Shown piece by piece: positions 28,842-64,000 of a stretch of 64,000 nucleotides of DNA. Numbering within the stretch: position 1 is the stretch's first letter; each line of letters opens with the position of its first letter. The notes under the pieces are model-generated. The model saw nothing but the letters and a program-made list of their open reading frames with translations. It searched no databases and was not told where the DNA came from. Location of the stretch: positions 124,001-188,000 of IMG/VR virus record IMGVR_UViG_3300017917_002374. One strand, written 5' to 3'. The position numbers were made by a program, and so were the translations under genes.

Positions 28842-28858
28842 GATAAATTGAGAAGACA

Positions 28859-43855: not shown

Positions 43856-44200
43856 ATGTCTGAACTTGATCAACTGCTAGCAGAAGCAGCATTTCAAACT
43901 CATTTCAAGCAACAAAAAGAATTTTTATCAGTTGTGTTCAAAGATGCCTGTGTGTTTACCTACAATGGCGGAATTTTTGAATTGACTCCTGAATTTTTAG
44001 CTGGTCTACAGTTGCGCAACAATTATAATACAGATAATAAGATATGGGCCATTGATAGAAATCAAACTTGTATTTTAATTGACAACGTTGATCTATTCAT
44101 TGAAAAAGCAACTAAAATTTACAATAAGGCATTGGAAGAATACGGAACTGCATGGAATAACATGCGCACCAAACGATCAGTAAGTGCATTGATAAAATGA
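43856..44200 (+). CDS. Hypothetical protein
   Basis: AAGGA RBS. Confidence 0.7.
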   Translation: MSELDQLLAEAAFQTHFKQQKEFLSVVFKDACVFTYNGGIFELTPEFLAGLQLRNNYNTDNKIWAIDRNQTCILIDNVDLFIEKATKIYNKALEEYGTAWNNMRTKRSVSALIK

Positions 44201-49341: not shown

Positions 49342-49880
49342 ACCTTAACAAAGATGCATTTAGCAGTGGTCAAATAGGTAGCAAGCTATGGCTGTGCAAA
49401 CAACTTGAATTAACTGATCTTTATAGTAAAGAAACAGCTATCTATGGTGGTTGGTATGGATTAACCGCATTTCTTTTGTTAAGTAGATCAAAGTTCAATG
49501 TTGAAAAAATACGCAGCTATGACATTGATCCTGCTTGTGTACCAATAGCGGACATGATTAATGAATACTGGGTATGGCAAGATTGGAAGTTTAAAGCATT
49601 TACAGAAGATTGTAATCATCTTTATACCGAAGCAGATTTAATTATAAACACTTCAACAGAACATTTTGATGGTTTTGGCTGGTGGCACAATATCAAAAGT
49701 GGTACCGCAGTTGCTTTACAAGGCAATAATATGAGGCACGATGACCATGTTAATACCTGCGGTTCTTTAACAGATTTTTGCGAACAGTTTCCATTAACCA
49801 ACGAAATTTATAGAGGATCATTAGAATTTAATTATCCCGAATGGAGTTTTGAAAGATACATGATTATCGGCATTAAATAG
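49326..49880 (+). CDS. Putative class I methyltransferase
   Basis: IYGGWYG, SYDID, LIINTSTEH, LQGNN. Confidence 0.55.
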   Translation: MQQFLDLNKDAFSSGQIGSKLWLCKQLELTDLYSKETAIYGGWYGLTAFLLLSRSKFNVEKIRSYDIDPACVPIADMINEYWVWQDWKFKAFTEDCNHLYTEADLIINTSTEHFDGFGWWHNIKSGTAVALQGNNMRHDDHVNTCGSLTDFCEQFPLTNEIYRGSLEFNYPEWSFERYMIIGIK

Positions 49881-49884: not shown

Positions 49885-50520
49885 ATGGAAATTGAATGCG
49901 GACCGGAGAATGATAAACGCACTCTAAAAGTATCTTTACCTCCAGTAGAAAAAGTAGGTGTATTTGTAAGCGGGGGTATTGATAGTGCTTTATTATACTA
50001 TCTACTTCTAGCAGAGAAGTATTTTTTACAAAGCAATCACCAGATTTACCCAATAGTAATCTACAGAAAAGAAGGGTCAAAATATTTTGCTGAGCCGGTA
50101 ATTAAAAAAATAAACAGTATTTTTGATCATGCTCTTCCTACAAAACGGCTTGGTAACACAACATTGCCCGAAGTACAACAGGTAAAATCAGCAGTTGAGC
50201 AAGCATTTCGTCTTCCGCCATATTTTCAAAGTGTTTTTATTGGAGTAATACAAAACAGACCAGAGCACGTTGTTGGGTTTGATCCAATACCACTACCCGA
50301 AGAAAAAGATAACGTGCTGATGCCTTTAAAGCATTTAGAAAAAACACATATTGTAGATTTATATTTTAGATTAGGAATTAATCATTTGCTTAAATACACT
50401 CATAGTTGCGATCAAAATGAACAATTATTGTGTCATGTTTGTAATGGATGTAGAGAACGGGCATGGGCGTTTGATCAATTAAATTTACAGGATCCAAGAA
50501 CAAATGAATCTCACACATAA
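49885..50520 (+). CDS. QueC-like PP-loop ATPase
   Basis: SGGIDS and C-x7-CxxCxxCxxR Zn motif (HSC...CHVCNGCRER); ATG 5 nt after TAAATA. Confidence 0.65.
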   Translation: MEIECGPENDKRTLKVSLPPVEKVGVFVSGGIDSALLYYLLLAEKYFLQSNHQIYPIVIYRKEGSKYFAEPVIKKINSIFDHALPTKRLGNTTLPEVQQVKSAVEQAFRLPPYFQSVFIGVIQNRPEHVVGFDPIPLPEEKDNVLMPLKHLEKTHIVDLYFRLGINHLLKYTHSCDQNEQLLCHVCNGCRERAWAFDQLNLQDPRTNESHT

Positions 50521-51256
50521 CGATAAAGTGCGAGGGTTACAAGTAATTAACCACATCGCATCTATAGTTGGCATATCATTGGCTTTTTATTTTCAAGAAT
50601 GGTACTTGTTCTTAGTGGCTTTACTAGTCTACTGGGCCATTGGAATTTTAGGAATTAATGTAGGATATCATCGCTTGTTAAGCCATAGATCTTTTAAAAC
50701 TCGTCTATGGACTGAAAAACTGTTAAGTGTTATTGGTATACTTACTACTGTAGGTTCTCCACTAGCATGGGTAGCAATACATAGACAGCATCACAGACGT
50801 GCAGAACATCCAGGCGATCCACACAGCCCATATCTAATTGGAAACTTACGGGCATGGTTTGGCATATGGCCTAAAATTAGACTTGATTTAAAACTTATCC
50901 GAGATCTGCGAGAACAAGAATTTCAAAGATGGTTACATAAAAACTATTTTGTTATAATTTTTGCCTATGTTGCTATACTAGCTTGTATCAATCCGTGGCT
51001 TGTTGTTTTTGCTTATTGTTTACCTGCTTGTTTGTGTTTGCATTCTTCAAGTGCGATCATTGTAATTGCTCACAGACATGGATATGTTACTCATAAAGTA
51101 AATGATCACAGTCGTAATAGTTGGATTGCAAATTTGATTACCATGGGCGAAGGTTGGCATAATAATCATCACGCTAAACCATATGCATGGAGCAATTGGG
51201 AAAAATGGTGGGAATGGGACATACCTGCACTGATTATACGAGTTATCAAAAAATGA
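50504..51256 (+). CDS. Membrane fatty acid desaturase (delta-9-like)
   Basis: His boxes HRLLSH, HRQHH, HNNHH; GEGWHNNHH. Confidence 0.92.
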   Translation: MNLTHNDKVRGLQVINHIASIVGISLAFYFQEWYLFLVALLVYWAIGILGINVGYHRLLSHRSFKTRLWTEKLLSVIGILTTVGSPLAWVAIHRQHHRRAEHPGDPHSPYLIGNLRAWFGIWPKIRLDLKLIRDLREQEFQRWLHKNYFVIIFAYVAILACINPWLVVFAYCLPACLCLHSSSAIIVIAHRHGYVTHKVNDHSRNSWIANLITMGEGWHNNHHAKPYAWSNWEKWWEWDIPALIIRVIKK

Positions 51257-51870
51257 ACGCTATCAAATTAAAAAAACAATTTGATTTGCACTCGTATCAA
51301 CTTGAGGGCTTAACAACACAATTTGGTCTTATTGTTAACGGTGTCTATCGCGGAATAAGATATTTTAAGGTACAGGACAAAGCTGCTCTTAAGTTACTAG
51401 ATATGATTCCTGAGCGATATCAATCAAATTTTGATTTTAGTTGGGTTGAAATTAATTGCAAGATTCCCATACATGTGGATTCTATAAACCAAAGTGTGAT
51501 TAATATATATTACAAGACCGGTGATGCAGTAACTAACTTCTATAAACCAAAAGTTAAAAATAGTTATTATTTTGATCAAACAAACGCATACCATCACAAC
51601 GAGGTTGATCAAGAATCCACACAATGGTTTCAAGAAGAAAATGTTGATTTAGTTGAAAGTTTTATAGCTCACGAGAAAGACGGCTGGGTATTAAATACTT
51701 CACAGCCTCACAGTGTCAACCCATCAAATATTTTAAACGGCGAAACCTTTGAAGTTAACGGCGTTATATATAGCTGCGATATTTTTCGAACTTTTGTTCA
51801 AATTTACACCGCGACTTATCAATTTGATCAAGTCTGCGAAATGCTTCAAGCTACAGGATACATTGACTAA
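51253..51870 (+). CDS. HxD..H jelly-roll oxygenase-like protein
   Basis: IPIHVDS...LNTSQPHSV. Confidence 0.5.
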   Translation: MNAIKLKKQFDLHSYQLEGLTTQFGLIVNGVYRGIRYFKVQDKAALKLLDMIPERYQSNFDFSWVEINCKIPIHVDSINQSVINIYYKTGDAVTNFYKPKVKNSYYFDQTNAYHHNEVDQESTQWFQEENVDLVESFIAHEKDGWVLNTSQPHSVNPSNILNGETFEVNGVIYSCDIFRTFVQIYTATYQFDQVCEMLQATGYID

Positions 51871-52637
51871 TGAAAAAATACGGTAAAAACTTTTGGATGT
51901 GGTTCCTTCCTGCACATGTGTTAGGATTATTAGGTTTATTTTATGCGCTGGATAACCTATTAACTCTTTTTTTTCTTTGGTTTGTTATAGGTGTTGTTGG
52001 CAACGGCGTGGCAGCACATAGATATTTCGCGCACGGTCAATTTAAAACTTGGAAACCAGTTCGCTGGGGCCTCGCACTATTAACAACCCTAGGAGGCATT
52101 GGGCCTATTAGTTATTGGACTATTCAACACAAAGCTCATCACCTTTTTTCAGATACAGAGCTTGACCCTCATTCTCCTAAACACAAAAACATATGGCAAG
52201 TATTTTACTCATGGACTTTTCCCCAGGGACAAAATCAACAAGAATACCTCAAACATCGTTGGGCAAAGGTACTAGCAGCAAGACAAATGCGCGATCCTAT
52301 GTTTAGATTTTTTCATAATCACCATTACACTATTATCTACTTGTTCTGTTTATTGTTATTTGTAATAGATCCGGTACTACCATTAATCTATTGCTTGGCT
52401 TATGCAATAGACTTTTTTAAATTAGGTCTGATTAATTTTGTATGTCATAACTATGGCTATAAAAATTTTATTGGCAACGATTCAAGTACAAATAACTTAT
52501 GGCTTGGGTGGCTTACTCTAGGATTTGGATGGCATAATAACCATCATGCCAATCCTGGAAAATTAGTGCTTCAAGAAAAATGGTGGGAAATTGATATTGA
52601 AGGATATATAGGTAAACTATTATCTAAAAAATCATAG
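51870..52637 (+). CDS. Membrane fatty acid desaturase
   Basis: HRYFAH, HKAHH, HNNHH. Confidence 0.92.
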   Translation: MKKYGKNFWMWFLPAHVLGLLGLFYALDNLLTLFFLWFVIGVVGNGVAAHRYFAHGQFKTWKPVRWGLALLTTLGGIGPISYWTIQHKAHHLFSDTELDPHSPKHKNIWQVFYSWTFPQGQNQQEYLKHRWAKVLAARQMRDPMFRFFHNHHYTIIYLFCLLLFVIDPVLPLIYCLAYAIDFFKLGLINFVCHNYGYKNFIGNDSSTNNLWLGWLTLGFGWHNNHHANPGKLVLQEKWWEIDIEGYIGKLLSKKS

Positions 52638-54080
52638 ATTAAAAATCATAGTTTTGTAGATTTCAAATAATCGTTTTTTATCTCTTGCGTATTGACGCCA
52701 GGGTAGATCACTGGCAGGTATGTTTTTTAAATCTTTAATGTCGTAGCCATAACTTAATAAGGCAAATAAAAACCAAGTTGACGGTGTATTTTTTCCATAT
52801 AGTCCATGTGCGTTAAATTCTTCTGCAAGCTCTAATGCTTTAGAATATGTAAAATTGTCATTATACCAGTGCCCGTCACTGTCAATAGTATATCCGTATT
52901 GTGCAAAATTTATATCAAACTCGCTTTTGTAATGCGTGTCTGATCTAATGAACAGCGGAAACCATACATCATTAATAGGTGATTGTTGGCACCATTCGTG
53001 TGTTTGTCTAATGGTATTTTCTGTATCGTGTGGTAATCCTATTATAAAACTACAAGTGATAGGTATTTCTTTTTTCCACTGATTATCGTGCAAATCAAGT
53101 AAAAAATCTTTGACTTTGGTTGGACTCATTCCTTTACCAATTACTTTACCAGTGCGATGATTCAGAGTCTCAATTCCAAAAAATGCAGATCCAAGCCCCA
53201 TTTCATAAAGCAAATTTATTTGTTCTTTGTGATGATAAATTAAATCTAATCTTAAGTAAGTAACAAACTTAATTTTAAAAGGTAAAGATGTAATCGCTTG
53301 ATGCAATCTCTCTAGTTTGAATGTACTATCGTTAAATGTATCGTCAGTAAAATAATAATTTGTAGTTCCATATAATTCGTAGTTTTTAACTAACTCATTC
53401 TTAATGTGTTCTGGATCTCGTAGATAATCAAATTTCTTTTTTCCATTAAGTGGATAAGCACAAAACTTACATTTAAAAATACAGCCTCTACTAATTTCTA
53501 TTGGTAAAGTTTCTTTAGGCAACACACAGTCGTGCTTGTGCCATTTATGATCCATGTGTTCAATATCAAAATGATCCGCGGCACCGTCTATAATACTAGT
53601 AGTACCTTGCATGGGCCAAATTCTTTTTGTTTTTTTCTTGATATTGATCAAATATTCTACAACACTTTGTTCACTATATCCATGAAAAATTGCATCAAAC
53701 AAACTATCATTTTTAATCTGATGACTTTGTGCACCACCTGCTAATAATTTTAATCCAGGATATTTGGATTTAATTTGTTCTAAACTTTGACGTATTGTGG
53801 TAGGAATAACTGTTTCAAAATTACGATCAGCACTAATAAATTTTTTCTTAGTGGTTTCGTTAAAATAGAAACTAGTAGATACCCCAATAGCCAGAGTGCT
53901 TTGATCAACAAACTTATCCAATAAACTATTGATTTCTTCTAGACTAAAATGATCAGTAAAATCAATCACCTGGCAGCTGAATCCGTGATCACGGCAATGT
54001 GAGGCCACTTGGTAAGCTCCAATAGATCTTTGCCAAACAGGACCAGCTGTGTTTGTTAGTATAACCAAATCAACGGACAT
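52632..54080 (-). CDS. B12-binding radical SAM enzyme
   Basis: N-terminal cobalamin-type domain (GAYQVASH, GVSTSF, GGAQ), SRGCIFKCKFC, TDDTFN, FGIET. Confidence 0.88.
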   Translation of the reverse strand: MSVDLVILTNTAGPVWQRSIGAYQVASHCRDHGFSCQVIDFTDHFSLEEINSLLDKFVDQSTLAIGVSTSFYFNETTKKKFISADRNFETVIPTTIRQSLEQIKSKYPGLKLLAGGAQSHQIKNDSLFDAIFHGYSEQSVVEYLINIKKKTKRIWPMQGTTSIIDGAADHFDIEHMDHKWHKHDCVLPKETLPIEISRGCIFKCKFCAYPLNGKKKFDYLRDPEHIKNELVKNYELYGTTNYYFTDDTFNDSTFKLERLHQAITSLPFKIKFVTYLRLDLIYHHKEQINLLYEMGLGSAFFGIETLNHRTGKVIGKGMSPTKVKDFLLDLHDNQWKKEIPITCSFIIGLPHDTENTIRQTHEWCQQSPINDVWFPLFIRSDTHYKSEFDINFAQYGYTIDSDGHWYNDNFTYSKALELAEEFNAHGLYGKNTPSTWFLFALLSYGYDIKDLKNIPASDLPWRQYARDKKRLFEIYKTMIFNL

Positions 54081-54138
54081 AATTTTTGTACTTGCGAAGT
54101 GAGAGTATAACTACTTATAACAAGAACGAGAAAGAAAA

Positions 54139-54801
54139 ATGAAACTAGCACTTATTACCGGCGGTACCAAAGGTATCGGAAAAGCCATTGCTGAAGTTCT
54201 AAAAAATGAATATGAAGTTGTCACTGTTGGTAGATCTAATTCTGCTACAGAACCGGGTGATCTTAATGATAAAAATTTTAGACATTATCTAGCTACTAGG
54301 TATACCCCCGATGTGTTTGTCAATAATGCAGCACTTTTATCTTATAACCTTGAAACCATGATCAACATGAACGGTATCATAGCTGTTGATTTACTTTTTA
54401 GGTTCTACGAAAAAATGCCTAGCGGTAAAATAATTAATGTGAGCAGTATTAGTGCAGAAAAAAACTTTTTAGCAAAAGAACCTGAAATACGCATTGCTTA
54501 CGCAACTGCTAAAAAATATTTAAAAGATGTTTCTCTAGCTTTATCTTATAGTAAAAACAAACCAGTTAAGGTTATGTGCGTCAGTCCTGCTGCTACTGAT
54601 ACTGACATGATAAAATCTATTTCTAATAACTATCAACCACTTGAAGAACACTATACCAACTACGATTGGAATACAAGTATTTGTTGGACTAGGCCGCACG
54701 AAGTTGCAAATATTGTTAAATGGATGATTGATCAACCAGAATGGATTAATATTCCCGAACTAGTAATTGATAACCATTATTCAAATGCAATTAATTGGTA
54801 A
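54139..54801 (+). CDS. Short-chain dehydrogenase/reductase
   Basis: TGGTKGIG, VNNAA, NVSS, YATAK. Confidence 0.9.
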   Translation: MKLALITGGTKGIGKAIAEVLKNEYEVVTVGRSNSATEPGDLNDKNFRHYLATRYTPDVFVNNAALLSYNLETMINMNGIIAVDLLFRFYEKMPSGKIINVSSISAEKNFLAKEPEIRIAYATAKKYLKDVSLALSYSKNKPVKVMCVSPAATDTDMIKSISNNYQPLEEHYTNYDWNTSICWTRPHEVANIVKWMIDQPEWINIPELVIDNHYSNAINW

Positions 54802-56685
54802 TTATAAATCCCAAAAAAACAATCTATCTTCTGGAGATTTTGAATCAAAAAAAGTTTTTTGCGCTTGTATTTGAATTTTTTCCAAAACTCCTTCTTTTAA
54901 AGTCACATTGTCATACACATAGTATAGATATAAATCATTACTGTAAGTCACGCTGTGGGGAGTATAAGCGGCATTAAAAATTAAAACACTGGATCTTGCA
55001 TGTGTTTGAATTGTGCAAGGTTCAATATTTTCTACATAAGAATTTAATAAATTAGGGTTTGTATAATAACGTGAAAACAACGGATCGGTTTCGCTGATTG
55101 GATCATAAAAAGAGTAAGTAACTGGTTTGTCAAAAAATGTTAATCTAACAATAAATGTAATTGTATATTTTTTTACATCACTAAATCGGTGGGTATGAAC
55201 ATTGATTTGTTTTCCTAAACTATTGTGCCCAACAAGAACTGCGGAATGTTCACAGTCATAAATGTATTCTTGTGCCATTTGTTCCACTTGATGGCTTAAC
55301 TTTGTTAATCTATGATATATAAATGGTTCTTTACCAATCGCAAATTGTAATGCATGTTCAAAATCATATGTTAATAAATCTGGAAAATCTTTCATTGATT
55401 TTTGACTCGGGTCAAGACGAACTATATCACTGGTTCTCTTTTTAAAATACCTGGCTCCATCTATACCAACATTCTTAAATTTTCCTTGACCAATATACTG
55501 TTGAACTTTTCCCAAAGGAACAATGTTTATTACAAACCAATAAGCAAAATAAGGAATAAAAACCCAGTCTATCAACACATTTGCATCAGGATATGTGGTT
55601 TCTAGGAACTCGCTTGTATACCCATCAGAGGATGTGTAACGATAAAAATCAACTGATTTATCTAGATAGTTTTTTTGCAATCTATCAATCATGTTTTGAT
55701 ACTGTTCACTAGTTCGTTTAGAAAAGTCATAGTAAGAATTTTGATTCCAGAAAATCACTCTTAACTCTGATCTCAGCTGATCAAAACTTTGATGTTCTTC
55801 AACTGCTAGAACTTCGGGCGCAGTTAATAAAAGTGTGTACAGATCTTTTACATCTTGCTCAGAATGAGTTTGTTCAATTAATTCTTTCTTGTGTGTAACA
55901 TTGTATACCGTGTATCTTTCTTGGTTGTTATAAACTTTTTTAGGATTATATTTGGTTACACTTGATTTCAAGAGCTTGTTATACTTGTTTATATCAGGTA
56001 TACCGCTGACTACCATTAGTATTTTTGATTTTCCTTTGTGATCTGCTCCGTGCAAGAAAGCTCCGTTGTTAAAAGCAAAAGAATTTGTATCGTCGGGCAA
56101 GATTACATAATCAAGTTTTGTGTCATTACCTTTATTCTTTGCAACATAAAAAGTTGGATCAGAGTTTTCGTCGTAGATAATACTTCTACATGACAATGGT
56201 AAATTGTAAGTCCAATCTTGATCTCTATGCAAGTCAACCGGTCTTGTGTTTGACCAAAATCTTATAAAAAAGATTTCTTTATAAGGAAATAATTCAAATA
56301 CTTGTTCGTATAACTCAGGAAATATTTTTGTTGCATCAACATTGTGATTTGCAATAGTGTTTGTTCCAAACCATTGTTTTGCTGAAGGAGATCTATAAAT
56401 TTCTAAGGTACGCCAATAAGGATTGTGCCAACTGCTTTGATTATCATTTTTGTCAGCATACTCATCAAATGATTCTATTTGTCGTAAACCTGGTATAGAA
56501 TTTTTTTTAAAATAATCTACAAAATGTTCTATGTCTTTAGGTAAAATTTTTTCAATAGCCAAAGGCATCCAGGGAATATCACTATATTCCCTTTCTAAAT
56601 TAATAAATTGTTGTTGCGTTTGACTGTCTAGCCAAACTGTCTGTGGAGTAGGTTTGCCCGAATGATCAAGCGGGGTCTGGATCAT
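54802..56685 (-). CDS. Fusion of two oxygenase-like jelly-roll domains
   Basis: DLHRD...FLHGA in N-part; VHTH...YTPHSV in C-part. Confidence 0.5.
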   Translation of the reverse strand: MIQTPLDHSGKPTPQTVWLDSQTQQQFINLEREYSDIPWMPLAIEKILPKDIEHFVDYFKKNSIPGLRQIESFDEYADKNDNQSSWHNPYWRTLEIYRSPSAKQWFGTNTIANHNVDATKIFPELYEQVFELFPYKEIFFIRFWSNTRPVDLHRDQDWTYNLPLSCRSIIYDENSDPTFYVAKNKGNDTKLDYVILPDDTNSFAFNNGAFLHGADHKGKSKILMVVSGIPDINKYNKLLKSSVTKYNPKKVYNNQERYTVYNVTHKKELIEQTHSEQDVKDLYTLLLTAPEVLAVEEHQSFDQLRSELRVIFWNQNSYYDFSKRTSEQYQNMIDRLQKNYLDKSVDFYRYTSSDGYTSEFLETTYPDANVLIDWVFIPYFAYWFVINIVPLGKVQQYIGQGKFKNVGIDGARYFKKRTSDIVRLDPSQKSMKDFPDLLTYDFEHALQFAIGKEPFIYHRLTKLSHQVEQMAQEYIYDCEHSAVLVGHNSLGKQINVHTHRFSDVKKYTITFIVRLTFFDKPVTYSFYDPISETDPLFSRYYTNPNLLNSYVENIEPCTIQTHARSSVLIFNAAYTPHSVTYSNDLYLYYVYDNVTLKEGVLEKIQIQAQKTFFDSKSPEDRLFFWDL

Positions 56686-57052
56686 TGAAAATTTGATCGT
56701 AACTTATTCTTTGTTCCTCAAGAATACGAGGATCGTCTGACGCCCATGCATAATCATCTTCTGGCGGATACAGCCTATGAAATTCAATGCCCATGGTTTG
56801 CATGTATTCTTCCATTGCTCGCTGTAATTCTAAATGTTCAGTTTCGTGATCTTTGTGCCAAGAATCATAAGATTCTTTTGATTCCCAAACAATATAAATC
56901 TGAGCATAGCTTTTATCTTCTGATCGATAGTATAAAATGTCCAAAACTCTAGGATCAGCAAAAATAGTAGATCCTAGCTCTATTGGGCCCAAATAATGTT
57001 CAAGCAACACGTCTGCGCCTGGCTTTTCATAAGTTTGTTTAACAACGTACAT
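56666..57052 (-). CDS. Hypothetical protein (ABM-like barrel?)
   Basis: IYIVWESKESYDSW; AAGGA RBS. Confidence 0.5.
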   Translation of the reverse strand: MYVVKQTYEKPGADVLLEHYLGPIELGSTIFADPRVLDILYYRSEDKSYAQIYIVWESKESYDSWHKDHETEHLELQRAMEEYMQTMGIEFHRLYPPEDDYAWASDDPRILEEQRISYDQIFNDPDPA

Positions 57053-57111
57053 AAACTTTCCTTGTGGATATATTGGAACTAAATATCTTTACAACTATTT
57101 AGTGCTATGGA

Positions 57112-57585
57112 ATGTTTTTAAATTATCTTTATCATTGGCCAAAAATTCCGCTAGAACTGCATCAACAAGTCTCACATATAATTACAAACGAACAAGACGA
57201 ACTAGATAAGTTTGTAGGAAGTTTTTACGCTCCTTATAAACTATTTCCGATTACAGGAGAGTTGGGCAACTGGTTAAAATCAAATTTGCCTATGAAATTT
57301 GGATCTTGTTTTCACATACATGTAATCACCGATGATCTTGTGGTTCATAAAGATTACATGCAAGAAAAATATAAAGTAAACTATATATTTGAAACTGGCG
57401 GAAGTTTAGTGCGCACAAACTTTTACAACGATAATCAAATACTAGTAGAGTCTCACCAAGTATCGCCTTACGAGTGGCACTGGTTTGACGGTACTACATA
57501 TCATAATGCAACTAATATTGAACCAGGAAAAAAACGTATTGCAATAACTTTAGGAACTAATGATGTTGACAGTTTTGACCTATGA
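57112..57585 (+). CDS. HxD..H jelly-roll oxygenase-like protein
   Basis: VVHKDY...WFDGTTYHNA. Confidence 0.5.
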   Translation: MFLNYLYHWPKIPLELHQQVSHIITNEQDELDKFVGSFYAPYKLFPITGELGNWLKSNLPMKFGSCFHIHVITDDLVVHKDYMQEKYKVNYIFETGGSLVRTNFYNDNQILVESHQVSPYEWHWFDGTTYHNATNIEPGKKRIAITLGTNDVDSFDL

Positions 57586-58162
57586 ACATTTGGATCTTTT
57601 TTTAGAATTAAAAAAGAACAATCCAGGGCAGTGGAAATTAGGAATAGCGTTTGAACAAACAGTAGATAATTCTAGATTTTTTCTTGAACGATTGGTATCA
57701 GAAAAAGCATTTAGTGTTGGATGGATAGAAGATGGCAAATTACTTAGTATGTCAAGTATGCACGATCTAGATAATCAAACCTGGGGCTGGCTATACTATG
57801 CTAACGTCGCACAATCTTATATGAATTTTTCGCGCAATCATGGACTAGAAGTAATTAACGAGATGTTTAAAGAAGCTGCTAAAAGAAAGTACAGTACTTG
57901 TGTTACTCTTGTGCGAGACGATTTTGCATCAATTACTAGCGATGCAGTTGGAAAGATGCAGAAAACTATCGCATCCTGGCATGACCAAGTACCAGAAATA
58001 AAAAAATATCATTGGGTTGATGAAGCTAAAATTCCCGCCAATTCATTTTCAAAATTGTTTTATGTGTCTTGGATGATGGGTTTTAGAACATGGCCTGTAA
58101 ATCTTAGAGTAAGACTGGGATTTTTAAAACAAGAATTTCGTAACGAAATTTTATTTTCTTAA
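57560..58162 (+). CDS. Hypothetical protein (GNAT-like fold?)
   Basis: SVGWIEDGKLLSMS..WLYYANV pattern; fold inferred. Confidence 0.45.
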   Translation: MMLTVLTYEHLDLFLELKKNNPGQWKLGIAFEQTVDNSRFFLERLVSEKAFSVGWIEDGKLLSMSSMHDLDNQTWGWLYYANVAQSYMNFSRNHGLEVINEMFKEAAKRKYSTCVTLVRDDFASITSDAVGKMQKTIASWHDQVPEIKKYHWVDEAKIPANSFSKLFYVSWMMGFRTWPVNLRVRLGFLKQEFRNEILFS

Positions 58163-58603
58163 GCATTGCCGAGTCTTGAAACAAATATCCCATATAGGCC
58201 AAAAAAGTCCAAAATTTACTTTGCTATTAACATGATGTAGTAAATGCCATTTTCCGCTAGTTAACCAGGGGTATATTGAAAAATTTTTGTTGTGTTCTAT
58301 TCTTTCTTGCAACAACGAAGCCCACAGATAATAAAAAATAAGTATCCACCAATGACCAGTAATCCAACTAAAAATGACTGTGGGAATCACTTCTGTTATC
58401 CATAAATCAGCGGTGCTTTTATAGGTATCATTGAATAATAATAAGTTATTCCAATGCCATTTGGTATGATTTAGATTTATATATTTGTGATGATCCCAAT
58501 GCCAAGATCGTAACATGGGTATCTTATGCACTGCTCTGTGAATCCAATACAACACAAAAGTCCAGAGTAAAAATATAGATATAAAATTAAAACTTTTTTC
58601 CAT
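58151..58603 (-). CDS. Sterol desaturase/fatty acid hydroxylase family
   Basis: YWIHRAVH, HWDHH, EH, HLLHH, NFGLF..WD. Confidence 0.85.
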   Translation of the reverse strand: MEKSFNFISIFLLWTFVLYWIHRAVHKIPMLRSWHWDHHKYINLNHTKWHWNNLLLFNDTYKSTADLWITEVIPTVIFSWITGHWWILIFYYLWASLLQERIEHNKNFSIYPWLTSGKWHLLHHVNSKVNFGLFWPIWDICFKTRQCLRK

Positions 58604-59072
58604 ATACCATAATTGATGCTTTTGGCCCAGAATAGCTAGTAGGCTGATTATCTTTAATTTTTATTACATCCTTATTTTGAACTGATACCAAACTCATAGT
58701 TCGTTTAGCTCCTAGTTCTTTTGATTTTTGAAGATAATAAGGAAAACATAGCTTACTAATTCCTGTACCACGTTCTTCGGGTAAAGAGAAAGCCGTTACT
58801 AACATTGAAACTTTATCTTCAGTGATAACAAAAGAAAGTCCACTTAATACCTTGTGATGTGCATCTTGAGCATATACCGCATGACAAGAACTTAACTGTT
58901 CCCAATAAAAACCTTGAGTTCCTAGATTGTTCCTTAACAGTTCTGCATAAGTGTTAAAAAGTAAACCCAAAGCAGGACTTTGTACTATTTTATTGGCAAA
59001 GTATATATTAATATCTTTAAGATTTTTATCTTTTGTTGATTCTAATAATATAACATCATGCAGCATCTTCAT
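58587..59072 (-). CDS. GNAT-like acyltransferase
   Basis: AFSLPEERGTGIS acyl-CoA binding motif A. Confidence 0.65.
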   Translation of the reverse strand: MKMLHDVILLESTKDKNLKDINIYFANKIVQSPALGLLFNTYAELLRNNLGTQGFYWEQLSSCHAVYAQDAHHKVLSGLSFVITEDKVSMLVTAFSLPEERGTGISKLCFPYYLQKSKELGAKRTMSLVSVQNKDVIKIKDNQPTSYSGPKASIMVYGKKF

Positions 59073-59544
59073 TAATTAAAGACCTTGTTAAAATATAGTG
59101 AGTGGGGTGCATACCAACTAGCTTTGATCTATTTAGACTTGACAGATCTTCAATATGCAAAATATGATATAATCCACTAATGTCTTTTTGTTTGCCATAC
59201 GAGATCATATGGTCAATACATTTCTTATGCATATTACTGCTATAAGAATATGCTGGATCTTCAAAAATCAAAAGAATATTAATCATGTTAAATTCTTTTT
59301 CATTAACAAAACAGATCCCCCCAATTGTATTTTTATCTTTGTCTGCCGCCCAAATAATTTGTGCATCATTGAGTTTTTTCCACTCTAAACTGGGCTGTTG
59401 AATATTTTGAGTGTGCATGTTAGATAAAGTCTGAAAAATTACTGCAAGCACCGATCGTATTGCCACATGTTCACAATACCAGAAAGTTATTTCTTGATCT
59501 TGATCTTTAATGGTTTCTATAAGTTGTTCCATTTTACTCTCCAA
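59056..59544 (-). CDS. GNAT-like protein
   Basis: Similar layout to neighbour (IIWAAD..IGGICF..ILLIF). Confidence 0.5.
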   Translation of the reverse strand: MESKMEQLIETIKDQDQEITFWYCEHVAIRSVLAVIFQTLSNMHTQNIQQPSLEWKKLNDAQIIWAADKDKNTIGGICFVNEKEFNMINILLIFEDPAYSYSSNMHKKCIDHMISYGKQKDISGLYHILHIEDLSSLNRSKLVGMHPTHYILTRSLINEDAA

Positions 59545-59547
59545 AAA

Positions 59548-60087
59548 CTAAACTAAATTTTCTAATACTTCTTGGTATGTATGATTACACCATTGGAATG
59601 CAACAAAAATTCGTGGGTTAAGTGAAATTCGTTTTACGCTATGTATTTCGCTTACATTTAATAGATAGGTTTGATTACTACTGGCCACAAATTTGCAAAC
59701 TGGATTTAAATCTGTTTCATGATAGATGTTTTCTATACTTTGTCCGCTATGTGCATATCCTCGTACTTGACTATTTTTTGTTGCGTAAAATATAGTATGA
59801 TCATGTTCGGCTTCAACATAGTAATTTAAACTTGCATTAACGTTGTGATCTTTATGAGGATTGAGCATACCCTCGCCATTTATTTCTGCGTATAATGCGT
59901 ATGTAGGAGTAATTTTACAGAATTTTTTAATGTTTAATTGTAAAAAAACTTCTTCGTTGACAGAGAAATATGTGAGCATGGAGTTGTATTGATTAACTTG
60001 TGTCTTTTTCAAGGTATGAAGGACCTCAATATTATGCTCCATGTAATTTTTAGTTTGTTGAAAATAACCTGGAAAACTATTCATCAT
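59548..60087 (-). CDS. HxD..H jelly-roll oxygenase-like protein
   Basis: LNPHKDH...LLNVSEIHSV..RI. Confidence 0.5.
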   Translation of the reverse strand: MMNSFPGYFQQTKNYMEHNIEVLHTLKKTQVNQYNSMLTYFSVNEEVFLQLNIKKFCKITPTYALYAEINGEGMLNPHKDHNVNASLNYYVEAEHDHTIFYATKNSQVRGYAHSGQSIENIYHETDLNPVCKFVASSNQTYLLNVSEIHSVKRISLNPRIFVAFQWCNHTYQEVLENLV

Positions 60088-60991
60088 AATATATTTCTTT
60101 GATAGGCGACAGTACTACCTGTCGAAATAAATTTCCATTGTGTACTCCAATGGCTAAATCTCTTTGTAATGGCCCAAACATATAATCCTCAATATCTTCT
60201 AATCCGTGCTTTTTTGCTCTTGGTATTAGTTCCGGCCAAGCTTCTCTATATCCCTGAATCTTTGTAGAATGTACTCCTCTTTTGCCCATAATTTTATCTG
60301 AAATTAAATCATTAAACCACTTGGTTTTAGCATAGGCTTTAAGTAGTCTATGAGACCATCGTAACCAATCTGAAATTCCTACTCTGTTTTGATTGATAAA
60401 ATATTTTAGTCTTCCAAAATCATATTCAATTTCAACATTTAACCAGGTACCCGGCTTGTCATAGCCCGGAGTAGTTCTCCAAAGTTCAGGGTTACCGTCG
60501 CCTAGTATAGGAATACCATCAACCCTATCAGTTAACGCTAGTGTTGTTAGTATTGGTGGTATAGTTATTTGAGCCTTTCTGCTACATTCTGCTATGTCAT
60601 GTTCAAAAAAATTTTTTACGTTAAAATCAATAAATTTGTAAGATACATTCATATTTTCACAGGCAACCACAGCATGAGACACATCATAGATGTTTAGATA
60701 ATCTTCAAACCTTCCAATATAAACCTGAAATGGTACACCAGCTTCTTTGAACGCTCGAACAAGCATTTCGCTTTCGCCGCCTCCGGAAAGCATTAAACTG
60801 AATTTTTCGTTTGGGTAATGATCTCTAATGCTTTGGCATGCTAATACCATTTCAGTTCTTAAATCTTTACACGGTGTTGAATCTAGTTCAAAATCAATGT
60901 TAAAAATTTGATCGTTGTTGCTTCTAAACAAAGCCGTGGGATCATCGTCGTAATACCACTTCATCCAGTTGTTTTCAAGGTAGGTAAACAT
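60077..60991 (-). CDS. PP-loop (adenine nucleotide alpha hydrolase) family protein
   Basis: SLMLSGGGESE (SGGxDS variant). Confidence 0.55.
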   Translation of the reverse strand: MFTYLENNWMKWYYDDDPTALFRSNNDQIFNIDFELDSTPCKDLRTEMVLACQSIRDHYPNEKFSLMLSGGGESEMLVRAFKEAGVPFQVYIGRFEDYLNIYDVSHAVVACENMNVSYKFIDFNVKNFFEHDIAECSRKAQITIPPILTTLALTDRVDGIPILGDGNPELWRTTPGYDKPGTWLNVEIEYDFGRLKYFINQNRVGISDWLRWSHRLLKAYAKTKWFNDLISDKIMGKRGVHSTKIQGYREAWPELIPRAKKHGLEDIEDYMFGPLQRDLAIGVHNGNLFRQVVLSPIKEIYYDE

Positions 60992-61509
60992 TATAAATTG
61001 TGTTCAATACAAAATTGCTTTACATCATTGTAATGAATATCGTATAAAGAAAGACTCAATAACATACGTCTTTGTTCTCTAGTAAACACACAATGTGGTT
61101 GTTTTAAATTCATTAAAATACCTTTATTACTTGCGTACGGCACTTCACAAGTTTCTCTTAATTCAATTGTGGGTTTACTGTGTAGGCGCTTTGCTGCAGA
61201 ATAGAAAGCATGTCCGTCAAAACCGTTTAGCAGTACATTCACAGCAACCTTTCTTGGTATATCTGTATGCCAGTGGTAGAACGTACTAGGGTCTATACAT
61301 AAAAGATGTATGTCGCAAACAAAATTATCAAAAAATTCTTTGACCCACTTGGTTTGCCAACTCACGGTGTTAACCGGAATTACTAGCATTTCAAATGCGT
61401 GTGCTGTTTTCCATTGTGAAACATGTGCTTGATCAACCATTTGCATCACAGCGTCGTGATCCAAAAAATCATCTTTGAGTGTATAGAAAAATTGAGAGGA
61501 ATCTAACAT
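60991..61509 (-). CDS. HxD..H jelly-roll oxygenase-like protein
   Basis: YHWHTD..AVN...LMNLKQPHCV..RRMLL; start placed at MLDSS. Confidence 0.55.
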   Translation of the reverse strand: MLDSSQFFYTLKDDFLDHDAVMQMVDQAHVSQWKTAHAFEMLVIPVNTVSWQTKWVKEFFDNFVCDIHLLCIDPSTFYHWHTDIPRKVAVNVLLNGFDGHAFYSAAKRLHSKPTIELRETCEVPYASNKGILMNLKQPHCVFTREQRRMLLSLSLYDIHYNDVKQFCIEHNL

Positions 61510-61563
61510 ATTGAAATAACCGTGCCTATAAATACTTATCACTAAAACCCATGAAAGATAAAA

Positions 61564-62109
61564 ATGCATGCTATAACTTGGCAGCCTGGTACCGACACAT
61601 TACTTGATCCATTATTTGATTTTCATAGAGAAATGCACTTTCGGAAGCAAGATCATCCTCTTTGGAAAAATTATAATAGGAGTCATTTCTTTGAAGAATG
61701 TGTGGCAATAAGTTTGGCATTTAATGAGCACAACATACCAGTATTGGGTAGTAGCATACTCAAACGAGACTGCTGGCCTAACAACGTTTATAGAATTTTA
61801 AATCGTCTCTGGGCCATGAATCCGCATCCCAGTCCAATTAAAGATTTACACCCTAGCGGGGGTCCAATACTAAGATCTCAGATTGACTGGCTTAAAAAAA
61901 ACTATGAGTACGATTTAGTGTTTATAAGTCGCGAATCTTCATACTGGCAAGAATGGACTGTGAATCAATACAAACGTTTATATGACTTAGAGTTTGAATA
62001 TGATACTAAATTATATCAGGTATGTGATAATCCAATAGACGACAGTTGTTGGCAACGTATAATTTATCAAGGTAATAAAGAACTATTGACACAATGGTCT
62101 CAAAAATAA
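61564..62109 (+). CDS. Hypothetical protein (GNAT-like?)
   Basis: TATAAATA upstream; RILNRLW, LVFISRE. Confidence 0.55.
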   Translation: MHAITWQPGTDTLLDPLFDFHREMHFRKQDHPLWKNYNRSHFFEECVAISLAFNEHNIPVLGSSILKRDCWPNNVYRILNRLWAMNPHPSPIKDLHPSGGPILRSQIDWLKKNYEYDLVFISRESSYWQEWTVNQYKRLYDLEFEYDTKLYQVCDNPIDDSCWQRIIYQGNKELLTQWSQK

Positions 62110-62882
62110 TAAAACAAATATTCCACTGGACCCCTACCTGGGGTGCCTGGCTACCTGTGCAGTTTTTTGGTATATTGGCTATCTATAATATTTTGACTGG
62201 TTCTACTTCGCCTTATTGGTGGATCTATACAATTATAGGATACTTTTTGTTTTCGGTTATAGGTATATCAATAGGATACCATAGATATCTAAGTCATAAA
62301 AGTTTTAAAACAAGAAAAATTTACCAAAGAATCATGCTCTGGTGCGGCGTAATGGCTGCACAAGGCACTCCTATTTTTTGGGCTATCATACATCGAGGGT
62401 ATCATCATAAGCACACCGATACAGATCTAGATCCTCATAGTCCAAGACATGGATTTTGGCATTCGTACCTTGGATGGTTATTTAAAATTAGACCTGTTAT
62501 GAATACCAAATATGTATTAGATCTAATGAAAAATCAGGACGTATTTTTTGCCCATAAAAATTATTTTACTATATTGTGGATATCAAATATTTTGTTATTG
62601 ACTATTAACGTAGATCTTTGGTTATATGGTGTGATGTTGCCTTGTTTTTTATCTTTCCATGCTTATGCTACCAACACTAGTATAAATCATTGCAAGGCAT
62701 TAGGTTATCAGCGATATAAATTAAACAACGATAGTACTAATGTAATAGTACTTTGGCCTTTATTATTTGGTGATGCGTGGCACAATAATCACCATAATAG
62801 AGCCGCTGATCCAAATTTTGGAAAAAGCACTTGGGAATTAGATCCTGCTTTTTGGATTATTAAGTTGATTCGTTCTGATTAA
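62094..62882 (+). CDS. Membrane fatty acid desaturase
   Basis: HRYLSH, HRGYHH, HNNHH; DPHSP. Confidence 0.9.
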   Translation: MVSKIIKQIFHWTPTWGAWLPVQFFGILAIYNILTGSTSPYWWIYTIIGYFLFSVIGISIGYHRYLSHKSFKTRKIYQRIMLWCGVMAAQGTPIFWAIIHRGYHHKHTDTDLDPHSPRHGFWHSYLGWLFKIRPVMNTKYVLDLMKNQDVFFAHKNYFTILWISNILLLTINVDLWLYGVMLPCFLSFHAYATNTSINHCKALGYQRYKLNNDSTNVIVLWPLLFGDAWHNNHHNRAADPNFGKSTWELDPAFWIIKLIRSD

Positions 62883-63120
62883 GAATTTTTTCAAGTGCGT
62901 CATGAAGACTTTGCAAAGTTTTTATTTCTGCGATTTCAGGGTACTCGTCAAGATTTATATCTATACCAAACTCTTCGTCACAGGCAATCAATAGCTCAGT
63001 TAGACTAAGACTATCAAGTCCTAAATCTTTTTTAAACTGTAAATTAAGATTGATATCAGTAACTTTCTTTTTATTAAAATGCTCACGTACAATTTTTAAC
63101 AAACGTTCTTCAATATTCAT
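62860..63120 (-). CDS. acpP: Acyl carrier protein
   Basis: DLGLDSL phosphopantetheine site, EEFGIDI; GGAG RBS and TAAATA upstream on minus strand. Confidence 0.88.
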   Translation of the reverse strand: MNIEERLLKIVREHFNKKKVTDINLNLQFKKDLGLDSLSLTELLIACDEEFGIDINLDEYPEIAEIKTLQSLHDALEKILNQNEST

Positions 63121-63176
63121 AGAATGTGCGCTCCGTATATATTTACACAGTACAGGCCATGTTTATAAATATTTTT

Positions 63177-63959
63177 ATGACCTTTGCTAATCAATATAGA
63201 CTTTTTTATTTTATCATACTTTTGTCTGTCCCATTAAGTGTATTTGTAGCTATTCAAACATCTATTTGGTATTTGATAGGCAGTTATCTGTGGATGCGTA
63301 TCACAAGTTTTTTATTTGTTCAAATAGGTATGCACAGATACTTTGCTCACAATGGGTTTACTACCGATAAAAAGCGTCATATTTTTTTAACTTTAGGCAG
63401 TATTCTCACTGGTAATGGCAGTCCATTAACTTGGAGTACTCACCATTTACATCATCATAGACATAGCGATACCAATCTTGATTTACATAGTCCTGTAAAC
63501 GGTATCATTAATACTACATTTTTATGGCCTATAAGAGATGTTAGTTATTTTGAAAACGGAAAACAAATAGGAATTACGCCAAAAAGACTTGTTAAAGATA
63601 AATTACTAATGTTTATTCATCAACACTATTTCAAAATATGGATCTTCATTATTCTACTAAGTGGGTTTATTGACTGGAAAATTACTTTGTTCTTATTTTT
63701 AGCTCCTGCAGGATGGAGTGTACTACACGGAAACATAATTACCAACTTTATAAGTCACTGGAAGCTGCCAGGGTCTTATAGAAATTTTGATACTAACGAT
63801 AACAGTTACAATAACAAATGGATTCAGCTACTACAATTTGGCGAAGGTTTACACAATAATCATCACCATAACATGCGTGATTATAATCAAGCTGTACGAA
63901 AAGACGAATTTGATTTGGCCGCTTGGACTATTGATAAATTTTTTAAGGTCACTAAATGA
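63177..63959 (+). CDS. Membrane fatty acid desaturase
   Basis: HRYFAH, HHLHH, GEGLHNNHH; ATG 63177 just after TATAAATA. Confidence 0.9.
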   Translation: MTFANQYRLFYFIILLSVPLSVFVAIQTSIWYLIGSYLWMRITSFLFVQIGMHRYFAHNGFTTDKKRHIFLTLGSILTGNGSPLTWSTHHLHHHRHSDTNLDLHSPVNGIINTTFLWPIRDVSYFENGKQIGITPKRLVKDKLLMFIHQHYFKIWIFIILLSGFIDWKITLFLFLAPAGWSVLHGNIITNFISHWKLPGSYRNFDTNDNSYNNKWIQLLQFGEGLHNNHHHNMRDYNQAVRKDEFDLAAWTIDKFFKVTK

Positions 63960-64000
63960 TTATTGGCACAGGAATTGATTTGGTAACTATTTCAAGATTT
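63956..64000 (+). CDS. acpS: Holo-ACP synthase N-terminus (3'-truncated)
   Basis: MIIGTGIDLVTISRF matches the AcpS N-terminal GxDxVxIxR signature; ATGA-coupled to desaturase; only 15 codons visible. Confidence 0.7.
   Translation, partial: MIIGTGIDLVTISRF

Follow-up and report, generated by a model that had tools for sequence, protein, structure and literature searches.

A predicted ACP, desaturase and acyltransferase lipid island in an uncultivated jumbo phage

The window analysed here is a 64,000-nucleotide stretch of IMGVR_UViG_3300017917_002374, a 354,959 bp record of an uncultivated freshwater-type jumbo phage. Its family-B DNA polymerase is 44-50% identical to those of the Phosso, Atu_ph07 and GAP32 jumbo myoviruses. 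An array of 18 tRNAs and the presence of tail-fibre genes agree with a phage origin. The window contains a sharply bounded low-GC accessory island of about 20 kb that begins at position 43856 and continues in the contig to position 64315, where the AcpS ORF ends. The GC content of the island is 34.1%, compared with 43.1% upstream and 41.1% downstream. The same contrast is seen in relative L005/L084 (handles beginning with L denote sequences used in the comparison, mostly other viral loci). The features of the island are as follows.

46320-47978 (+), GT2-like glycosyltransferase
47971-49341 (+), Twitch-domain radical SAM protein
49326-49880 (+), u184, no assigned function
49885-50520 (+), QueC-like PP-loop ATPase
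50504-51256 (+), desaturase 1 (Des1), SCD/DesC type
51187-51870 (+), u227, Fe/2OG-oxygenase-like
51870-52637 (+), desaturase 2
52632-54080 (-), class-B-like (B12-binding type) radical SAM enzyme, a likely C-methyltransferase
54139-54801 (+), short-chain dehydrogenase/reductase (SDR), ketoreductase-like
54802-56685 (-), u627, a fusion of a predicted N-terminal Fe/2OG oxygenase domain (55936-56685) and a C-terminal domain without assigned function (54802-55935)
56666-57052 (-), u128, no assigned function, related to part of the u627 C-domain
57112-57585 (+), u157, Fe/2OG-oxygenase-like (transitive evidence)
57560-58162 (+), u200, GNAT-like (weak evidence)
58151-58603 (-), small membrane di-iron enzyme of the FA_hydroxylase superfamily
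58587-59072 (-), u161, GNAT-like (weak evidence)
59056-59544 (-), u162, a paralogue of u161, GNAT-like (weak evidence)
59548-60087 (-), u179, Fe/2OG-oxygenase-like
60077-60991 (-), PP304, a PP-loop ATP pyrophosphatase
60991-61569 (-), u192, Fe/2OG-oxygenase-like
61564-62109 (+), u181, predicted GNAT-fold acyltransferase
62094-62882 (+), desaturase 3 (Des3)
62860-63120 (-), acyl carrier protein (ACP)
63126-63959 (+), desaturase 4
63956-64000 (+), AcpS (holo-ACP synthase), first 15 codons

The ACP matches PF00550 (E 1.2e-8) and E. coli AcpP (E 7e-8), and contains a DLGLDSL motif with the DSL serine. It scores 46.7 bits against TIGR00517, below the AcpP equivalog cutoff of 70.45. Its 3’ end overlaps Des3 convergently by 23 nucleotides. 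The 15 AcpS codons at the end of the window continue in the contig to a complete ORF of 119 amino acids (L001:1886-2245). This ORF matches PF01648 (E 8e-16), aligns end to end with solved AcpS (E 5e-15), and has the invariant D8 and K54-E55-A56 residues.

The four desaturases match PF00487 with E-values of 1e-18, 1.8e-16, 2.7e-11, and 6.6e-14 for desaturases 1 to 4, respectively. All nine metal-binding His are invariant, and the profile matches SCD1 at E 3.6e-35. The hydroxylase matches PF04116 (E 2.2e-14) and contains HxxxH, HxxHH, and HxxHH motifs. The SDR matches PF00106 (E 1.5e-14) and contains TGxxxGxG and YxxxK motifs. The class-B-like radical SAM enzyme matches PF04055 (E 1.8e-17) and contains a CxxxCxxC motif (CIFKCKFC). 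Its best NCBIfam hits are the PhpK-family, lipid-biosynthesis B12 rSAM, and HpnJ, all below their curated cutoffs.

Two PP-loop proteins are present. The first matches PF06508 (E 3e-9) and contains an SGGIDS motif and a C-terminal Cys cluster, but falls far below the QueC equivalog cutoff. The second, PP304, contains SGGGES within an invariant SGGxxSE pattern, and its profile hits NAD synthetase (E 4e-4), QueC, TtuA, MnmA, and LarE. PP304 co-occurs with the ACP-bearing clusters.

Four proteins are GNAT-like, none with a Pfam hit. The best supported is u181, for which the AlphaFold model has a pLDDT of 91 and a pTM of 0.87, and all 50 listed Foldseek matches in the PDB are GNATs. The TM-scores are modest (0.37-0.56), and u181 lacks a recognisable Q/RxxGxG/A motif. 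This protein has no Pfam domain or name in 182 clusters and appears to represent a new acyltransferase family. The other three rest on weak but consistent profile hits with E-values of 0.007-0.6. For the u200 profile, the top seven PDB hits are all GNAT-fold (E 0.007-0.16), and for the u161 and u162 profile the best GNAT hit has an E-value of 0.017. The u200 family was found in 23 viral loci and 0 bacterial loci.

Five proteins are Fe/2OG-oxygenase-like. Three of these (u227, u179, and u192) belong to one family, designated A6, which has invariant H, H, and R and a nearly invariant D (HxD..H..R) and gives weak JmjC hits. The u157 protein has an HKD..H pattern and is placed here transitively, as its homologue L025:13528-14016 is also hit by the A6 profile. 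The fifth is the N-domain of u627. Its AlphaFold model has a pLDDT of 85, its top Foldseek hits are AlkB, P3H, PHD2, and AspH, and the triad H/D-E/H is conserved. The u627 C-domain has no PDB hit. The two parts of u627 are separate genes in L089. The relationship of u128 to the C-domain was found by jackhmmer.

The upstream part of the island contains the GT2-like glycosyltransferase (PF00535, E 1.8e-5), which recurs near Des1-type genes in other viral loci, and the Twitch-domain radical SAM protein (NF033640, 304.8 bits against a cutoff of 170), which recurs with the desaturase in many viral loci. The u184 protein has no Pfam or PHROG hit and shows only a putative methyltransferase-like GxG motif. 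Its homologues occur in 18 non-redundant viral ORFs near the desaturase.

The first-pass annotation had listed an ACP, an AcpS N-terminus, four desaturases with intact His boxes, a hydroxylase, an SDR, a B12 radical SAM enzyme, at least two GNAT-like proteins, and two PP-loop proteins. That observation is confirmed almost item by item. Its start for desaturase 4 at 63177 is an in-frame ATG of the same ORF. It missed the five Fe/2OG-oxygenase-like proteins, which make up a large part of the island, as well as the island boundary and the link to tail-fibre genes.

The whole island is syntenic in a diverged relative, found in four samples, at 27-80% amino-acid identity. A core of AcpS, u181, a Des3-type desaturase, and the ACP recurs within about 2.5 kb in at least six distinct phages. 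In a further AcpS group, at 31-34% identity, AcpS overlaps a desaturase. A complete AcpS and co-occurrence of the genes in related phages had both been set as tests beforehand, and neither result refutes the earlier reading. More distant relatives (L087/L088 and L089/L090) add a ketosynthase (KS) with the invariant Cys-His-His-Lys set, a FabA/ApeI/ApeP-like dehydratase (DH), and a second ACP next to the same desaturase core, and L089/L090 also carry an SDR. In contig L093, the same desaturase clade is flanked by ACPs, together with an AMP-ligase, a KR, a KS, and an MBOAT.

It is unlikely that the island is only a mosaic of independently acting accessory genes. There are nine strand switches in 20 kb, which would also fit such a mosaic. 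Different relatives carry different subsets, and the upstream GT2, Twitch radical SAM, and u184 cassette also occurs without the ACP part. However, gene order is conserved over the whole island despite the divergence, the four-gene core recurs, and composition is uniform with sharp boundaries in two lineages. Neighbouring genes overlap, and the convergent ACP/Des3 overlap is also seen in L084, L087, and L089.

The four desaturases each belong to a separate, well-supported viral orthologue group, which suggests distinct roles. Desaturase 1 falls in its own viral group. The desaturase 2 group is shared with L009, L013, L019, and L029. Desaturase 3, the GNAT-paired and ACP-adjacent group, forms a clade with L084, L087, and L079 (support 99), and desaturase 4 forms a clade with L084 and L079 (support 100). 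The u181 protein lies directly upstream of a desaturase in dozens of viral loci, with at least 16 non-redundant cases, and occurs in 55 viral loci. The GNAT and the other accessory families are absent from 80 bacterial desaturase neighbourhoods and from 50,697 deposited phage genomes. The desaturases match only 3 of the 50,697 deposited phage records, including Pelagibacter phage Mosig at 26% identity.

Single-gene delta-9 lipid desaturases that act on host membrane lipids are established in cyanophages and pelagiphages (vFAD, PMC5776448), and are of the same Pfam family. The desaturases here could similarly remodel host phospholipids during infection, with the ACP and AcpS serving another purpose or boosting host fatty-acid synthesis. 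The closest cellular desaturases are probably ordinary acyl-lipid delta-9 enzymes and include cyanobacterial sequences that are presumably DesC-type. The best NCBIfam hit is the DesA family. Most viral loci with the GNAT-desaturase pair show no ACP within 10 kb, so the pair can evidently work without a phage ACP. This reading is nevertheless considered unlikely. Four to five deeply diverged paralogues, at 27-35% identity, are kept as separate orthologue groups. The desaturase is paired tightly and virus-specifically with a GNAT, repeatedly with AcpS and the ACP, and co-occurs with a KS and DH. A fluidity function needs none of these.

The best explanation, with a probability of roughly 0.55, is that the island encodes a virus-specific, previously uncharacterised pathway that tailors fatty acyl groups on a carrier protein and transfers them, probably yielding an unusual unsaturated, oxygenated acyl group. 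Homology establishes that AcpS is a complete holo-ACP synthase, that the ACP has the phosphopantetheine-attachment serine, and that the desaturases are SCD-type di-iron enzymes with all metal ligands intact; the GNAT fold of u181 is counted with these, from its structure model. The remainder is inferred, including phosphopantetheinylation of the ACP, its loading, action of the desaturases on acyl-ACP rather than on membrane lipids, the product, and the acceptor. In this view, AcpS would convert the ACP to its holo form and an acyl chain would be placed on it. In relatives this would be done by their own KS, KR, and ApeI/P-like DH. In this phage it would be done by host type II FAS enzymes or an unrecognised loader, and the two PP-loop ATPases are candidates for an adenylation step. 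The desaturases, which diverged anciently, would then introduce several unsaturations on the pantetheine thioester, resembling JamB and the bacterial polyyne desaturase triad. SCD enzymes themselves use acyl-pantetheine (CoA) substrates. The di-iron hydroxylase, the Fe/2OG-oxygenase-like proteins, the SDR, and the B12-type radical SAM enzyme would add hydroxyl, keto, or methyl groups. Finally u181, perhaps with u200, u161, and u162, would transfer the acyl group from the ACP to an amine acceptor, which could be a small molecule or lipid head group, a host envelope component, or the neighbouring fibre proteins.

The first-pass annotation had proposed that the phage makes a desaturated, hydroxylated, and methylated acyl group on its own ACP and transfers it by GNATs to virion proteins, host membranes, or a small-molecule product. 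This interpretation is partly supported. The KS, DH, and second ACP of relatives strengthen the reading that a chain is built or tailored on a dedicated carrier, and the tight GNAT-desaturase pairing fits transfer by a GNAT. Against it, no KS, DH, AMP-ligase/FAAL, acyl-ACP synthetase, or thioesterase was found in the 74 kb read for this phage, and its contig is not among the 80 best of 130 KS-bearing viral loci, which leaves ACP loading unexplained. No electron donor (ferredoxin, rubredoxin, or cytochrome b5) was identified in the island.

The bacterial polyyne clusters (cay/pgn) and the JamABC cassette also combine a dedicated ACP with several membrane-bound di-iron desaturases of the PF00487 family, which act together on an ACP-tethered acyl chain (PMC9828172). 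By this logic, the island could make a reactive, highly unsaturated fatty-acid derivative that is released and acts on competitors, on the host, or on host defences. Relatives have a KS, KR, and ApeI/P-like DH without an enoyl reductase, as in aryl-polyene pathways. This reading is also unlikely. No FAAL, thioesterase, rubredoxin, or ferritin was found here, all four desaturases are SCD-like, and the conserved partners are AcpS and a GNAT-fold protein rather than a thioesterase. Compared with type II FAS/PKS of the aryl-polyene kind, the KS and DH are lacking in the 74 kb read, and no chain-length factor, adenylating starter enzyme, or LPLAT acyltransferase was seen.

Aminolipid pathways of the ornithine-lipid type (OlsB/OlsC/OlsD/OlsE) follow a similar logic, in which a GNAT-like N-acyltransferase uses acyl-ACP, and a di-iron FA_hydroxylase-family enzyme and Fe/2OG (LpxO-like) hydroxylases then act. 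The resemblance is drawn by analogy of pathway logic. These pathways are not known to include desaturases or a dedicated AcpS.

The module repeatedly sits next to tail-fibre genes. The island ends against a virion structural protein and a 911-amino-acid tail-fibre gene, and Mtd_N-type fibre proteins lie within 3-2200 bp of the desaturase in 22 of 26 loci, in several arrangements, although linkage by descent inflates the count of 26. A doubtful alternative is therefore that the chemistry of the island is directed at the adjacent tail-fibre or virion proteins. This would mean lipidation by a GNAT related in fold to N-terminal acetyltransferases, hydroxylation by prolyl-, aspartyl-, or JmjC-like Fe/2OG oxygenases, and glycosylation by the GT2 proteins. 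No acceptor motif was identified in the fibres, and tail-fibre regions are general hot spots for accessory genes, so adjacency may be neutral. In favour of this alternative, the fold neighbours of u181 include Naa10, Naa50, and RimI, and those of the u627 N-domain include prolyl and aspartyl hydroxylases. The deposited-phage collection searched gave no ACP match. Also in its favour, a 2026 paper, whose text does not mention desaturases, describes a ‘host-interface island’ with duplicated ACPs in freshwater Flavobacterium jumbophages, and its authors propose that it acts at the host surface (PMC13573597).

The window belongs to IMGVR_UViG_3300017917_002374, a 354,959-bp viral contig. The same DNA is on record at JGI, and the AcpS region recurs in two further samples. 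The window encodes a family-B DNA polymerase that is 44-50% identical to those of the Phosso, Atu_ph07, GAP32, and CBB group of jumbo myoviruses. It also encodes an exonuclease, an HNH endonuclease (36601-37923, phrog_1314, E 2e-112), and a thymidylate synthase (40749-41666, PF00303, E 2e-106), the last two lying upstream of the island described below. An array of 18 tRNA genes (Leu, Ala, Pro, Gln, Arg x2, His, Phe, Thr, Ile, Met, Ser, Asn, Glu, Tyr, Asp, Lys, and Cys) is present on the + strand at 25969-29605, in the higher-GC stretch of the window. Tail-fibre genes follow the region of interest. The element is therefore an uncultivated jumbo phage. A megablast search of the region against deposited phages found no match.

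The GC content falls from 43.1% to 34.1% at position 43856 and returns to 41.1% directly after AcpS at 64315. The same contrast is shown by a diverged relative (L084). The upstream third of this low-GC island (43856-49880) contains two paralogous unknown proteins (u276 and u266, phrog_1903), a 552-aa GT2-like protein, a bona fide twitch-domain radical SAM protein (NF033640, above its cutoff), and u184. A methyltransferase reading of u184 rests on a motif only, with no family hit, and was not adopted. The GT2, twitch-radical SAM, and u184 trio recurs around Des1-type genes in other phages (for example, viral loci L031, L034, L015, and L016), which hints at a glycan or glycolipid side to the pathway.

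The first-pass annotation had listed an acyl carrier protein (ACP), the start of an AcpS at the window end, four desaturases, a hydroxylase, an SDR, a B12-type radical SAM enzyme, at least two GNAT-like proteins, and two PP-loop proteins. This observation is confirmed, as a counterpart was found for every item, although the B12-type and several of the GNAT assignments rest on weak matches. The features, with the strand where it is needed, are as follows.

49885-50520, QueC-like PP-loop protein
50504-51256, FA_desaturase (Des1)
51870-52637, FA_desaturase (Des2)
52632-54080 (-), radical SAM enzyme
54139-54801, SDR
54802-56685 (-), u627, a 627-aa fusion protein with a predicted Fe/2OG oxygenase domain
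57560-58162, u200, GNAT-like on weak evidence
58151-58603 (-), FA_hydroxylase
61564-62109, u181, predicted GNAT fold
62094-62882, FA_desaturase (Des3)
62860-63120 (-), PP-binding ACP
63126-63959, FA_desaturase (Des4)

The 15 AcpS codons at the window end continue in the contig to a complete ORF of 119 aa. It hits PF01648 at E 8e-16, and residues 1-116 align with the solved holo-ACP synthase 3qmn at E 5e-15, with 24 AcpS structures hit in total. Of the N-terminal GxGxD and central KEAxxK motifs (Mg2+ and CoA binding), D8, K54-E55-A56, and K59 are invariant in four phage AcpS sequences. The ACP is 86 aa in length, contains the DLGLDSL motif with the DSL serine expected at the start of helix II, and hits PF00550 at E 1.2e-8 and 92 ACP entries in the PDB. 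It scores 46.7 bits, below the TIGR00517 (housekeeping AcpP) equivalog cutoff of 70.45, and is a dedicated, diverged ACP.

The four desaturases are 27-35% identical to each other. All nine metal ligands, those of the three His boxes (HxxxxH, HxxHH, and HxxHH) plus the extra transmembrane His, are invariant in the four paralogues (H56, H61, H93, H96, H97, H190, H219, H222, and H223). Their profile matches the stearoyl-CoA desaturase SCD1 (4ymk) at E 3.6e-35 and AlkB at E 1.3e-5. The desaturases were considered as CrtW-type ketolases or AlkB-type hydroxylases, and this was rejected because the SCD1 match is 30 orders of magnitude better than AlkB and the His-box spacing is SCD-like. The DesA-family equivalog cutoff is not reached (45-74 bits against 400).

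The radical SAM enzyme has a CxxxCxxC core (CIFKCKFC) and hits PF04055 at E 1.8e-17. Its best NCBIfam hits are all B12-binding families (PhpK type, the lipid-biosynthesis B12 radical SAM, and HpnJ), and the alignment to the PhpK family spans residues 24-453, but every score is far below its curated cutoff (85.8 against 600) and there is no Pfam B12-binding hit. The two PP-loop proteins contain SGGIDS (QueC-like protein, PF06508 E 3e-9) and SGGGES (the 304-aa protein, PP304). The profile of PP304 hits NAD synthetase at E 4e-4, followed by QueC, TtuA, MnmA, and LarE. Both proteins are PP-loop ATP pyrophosphatases with homology to adenylating N-type ATPases. A 7-deazaguanine DNA-modification role for the QueC-like gene was rejected, as it scores 28 bits against the 150-bit equivalog cutoff and no QueD, QueE, FolE, or DpdA was seen.

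Pfam and PHROGs searches of the eleven unannotated ORFs gave nothing, and NCBIfam was applied to the already annotated genes only; profiles and structure models were needed for the rest. No ORF hits a Pfam acetyltransferase model. A 26-sequence alignment of the 181-aa protein u181 gave a confident AlphaFold model (pLDDT 91, pTM 0.87), and all 50 listed Foldseek matches in the PDB are GNAT acyltransferases (E from 5e-5, TM 0.37-0.56). The assignment of u181 is structural only, as motif A (Q/RxxGxG/A) was not found and neither Pfam nor a PDB sequence search gave a hit. Its invariant residues are R22, Y37, P59, R81, C162, and Q164. Profiles of the 200-aa protein u200 and of the paralogous 161- and 162-aa proteins (u161 and u162) give weak but consistent GNAT hits, with E from 0.007 to 0.6.

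Five proteins that the first-pass annotation did not list appear to be Fe(II)/2-oxoglutarate oxygenases. The family containing u179, u227, and u192 has an HxD..H..R pattern in which H78, H149, and R159 are invariant and D80 is nearly invariant; its JmjC profile hits are weak (E about 0.3). The protein u157 joins this family through a shared homologue. The N-terminal domain of u627 (u627N) is predicted to form a double-stranded beta-helix (pLDDT 85), with AlkB, proline 3-hydroxylase (P3H), PHD2, and AspH as its top structural neighbours. It is the only one of the five for which the fold is supported by a structure model. Its metal triad is conserved (H153 in 20/20, D/E155 in 20/20, and H212 in 17/20). 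The remainder of u627 is a 378-aa domain of unknown function. The two parts are separate genes in the relatives L089 and L011, and the oxygenase part is duplicated in L013 and L011. PDB profile searches with u181, u627N, and the u627 C-terminal domain were empty or uninformative; the last of these and the small protein u128 have no assignment.

A desaturase profile finds more than 540 relatives in IMG/VR. A look-up of the desaturase of viral locus L064 found no record. Some viral contigs carry four or five desaturase paralogues in a head-to-tail tandem run (L037 9237-13150, L007 9989-12917, and L010 9989-12984). One relative (L084), on a 71-kb contig and present in at least three further samples, is syntenic across the whole island at 27-80% amino-acid identity, including Des, ACP, Des, and AcpS and the same flanking fibre genes. 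AcpS is found in 17 viral contigs. In all six distinct phages of the close group, AcpS, u181, a Des3-type desaturase, and a short ACP lie within about 2.5 kb, while in a more distant group AcpS overlaps a desaturase gene. Homologues of u181 sit directly upstream of a desaturase in dozens of loci. The ACP gene and the Des3-type gene overlap convergently at their 3' ends by 18-29 nt in four diverged phage lineages (window 62860-62882, L084 8096-8124, L087 3814-3831, and L089 7064-7092), which is an unusual conserved arrangement.

More distant relatives add a ketosynthase (KS) with the invariant Cys-His-His-Lys set, a FabA/ApeI/ApeP-like dehydratase (DH), and a second, longer ACP. One lineage (L087, 5558-6367 and 13278-14576) also carries a Rieske protein and a UbiB/ABC1 kinase, and another (L089, 5050-5923) carries NifU and IscA-like Fe-S assembly proteins, inside or beside the cluster. 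These are possible electron-supply or cofactor-supply components and are missing from the window. A contig binned as Bdellovibrio (L093 1-17000, CBIHNI010000009.1, 49% GC) carries ACP, AMP-ligase, ACP, MBOAT, KR, ACP, Des, Des, ACP, and KS. Its two desaturases nest inside viral clades next to L059. Either viral DNA was binned into a MAG, or this is a cellular counterpart with Dlt-like (ligase, carrier, MBOAT) export logic.

The u181, u627N, PP304, u200, and oxygenase families were found in 15 to 55 viral loci each and in none of 80 bacterial loci around the closest cellular desaturases. Those cellular desaturases are only 31-39% identical. Seven of the nine representatives included in the tree form one separate group, although the deeper split has weak support, and each of the four window paralogues falls in its own well-supported viral orthologue group. 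A recent capture from a host was rejected on these grounds. The u181 family has 182 cluster representatives, none with a Pfam domain or a name. Among 50,697 deposited phage records there is no match to u181 or the ACP, AcpS matches only eight short, unannotated Firmicutes fragments, and the KS matches are distant. The only deposited 'phage' record with both a distant desaturase (28% identity) and two fabB-annotated ketosynthases is the multi-contig, metagenome-derived Acinetobacter phage MD-2021a (CAKLQH02 and CAKLQF02). No earlier description of such a phage cluster was found in the literature that could be searched.

The interpretation given with the first-pass annotation, that the phage makes a specially desaturated, hydroxylated, or methylated acyl group on its own ACP and transfers it by GNATs, is supported only in part. 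Homology establishes an intact AcpS and ACP pair, four intact SCD-type di-iron desaturases, a partner with a modelled GNAT fold, and a battery of hydroxylase, oxygenase-like, reductase, and radical SAM enzymes. The activities are inferred, including phosphopantetheine transfer to the ACP and any delta-9 regiospecificity and the substrate carrier (lipid, CoA, or ACP) of the desaturases. In this view, the ACP is activated by AcpS and carries a fatty acyl chain, and the desaturases act on the pantetheine-bound chain as in the polyyne desaturase triad and JamB (PMC9828172); SCD enzymes themselves use acyl-CoA. Other enzymes would then hydroxylate, oxidise, or methylate the chain, and the GNAT would transfer it to an amine acceptor.

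The weakest link is loading. No KS, DH, AMP-ligase, or thioesterase was found in the 74 kb of this phage that could be read. No island ORF hits PF00501, and tblastn with the L093 AMP-ligase was negative over the 74 kb. No hydrolase or thioesterase family was hit in Pfam, PHROGs, or, for the annotated genes, NCBIfam. A single-sequence KS query of viral contigs found only the phage that the query came from, and in the search repeated with an alignment the contig of the window was not among the best KS-bearing viral loci. The candidates for loading are host FAS enzymes acting on a FAS-like ACP (E. coli AcpP, E 7e-8) or the PP-loop ATPases. Many viral loci have the GNAT-desaturase pair without any ACP nearby, so the carrier-protein layer is an addition found in some lineages. 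With one ACP and four desaturases, the island resembles the polyyne clusters (cay/pgn) in having a dedicated ACP with three or more membrane desaturases, but it is not a member of that family because the fatty acyl-AMP ligase and the releasing thioesterase were not found in the 74 kb that could be read. It also does not look like a simple fluidity AMG. The system appears to be a virus-specific form of carrier-protein-dependent fatty-acyl tailoring clusters.

Phage lipid genes known so far are essentially single desaturases that adjust host membrane fluidity. Here, a phage lineage carries its own carrier protein, the predicted activating enzyme, a previously unannotated family with a predicted acyltransferase fold, and a set of old desaturase paralogues, and relatives also carry a ketosynthase and a dehydratase, which is the hardware of a self-contained acyl-chain pathway. 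Given its spread in viral contigs and near absence from deposited phages, a widespread viral biochemical capacity has gone unnoticed. If the product is a new lipid, a lipidated virion protein, or a reactive polyunsaturated metabolite, it would open a new area of phage-host surface biology and supply new desaturase and acyltransferase chemistry.

The island ends against a virion structural protein and a 911-aa tail fibre. Proteins that start with an Mtd_N domain lie within 3-2200 bp of the desaturase in 22 of 26 loci, in several arrangements. This may only reflect the usual accumulation of accessory genes near fibre genes, but it leaves open the possibility that the acyl product decorates the fibres. 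In this speculative and unlikely reading, the virus-specific core of AcpS, ACP, u181, and an SCD-type desaturase would build an unusual, multiply unsaturated and oxygenated acyl chain and attach it covalently to the neighbouring tail-fibre or receptor-binding proteins, or to another virion surface protein. Such phage-encoded lipidation of the host-recognition apparatus would explain why the module sits beside Mtd_N-type and other fibre genes in many uncultivated large phages. ACP-containing 'host-interface islands' are noted in freshwater Flavobacterium jumbophages in a 2026 paper (PMC13573597). A gene called as a 6,288-aa protein, with faint FG-GAP and E1_FCCH hits, starts about 7 kb downstream of AcpS in the contig beyond the window (L002 16939-20360), and the diverged relative also has a 6,288-aa gene in the same position (L084 1-361).
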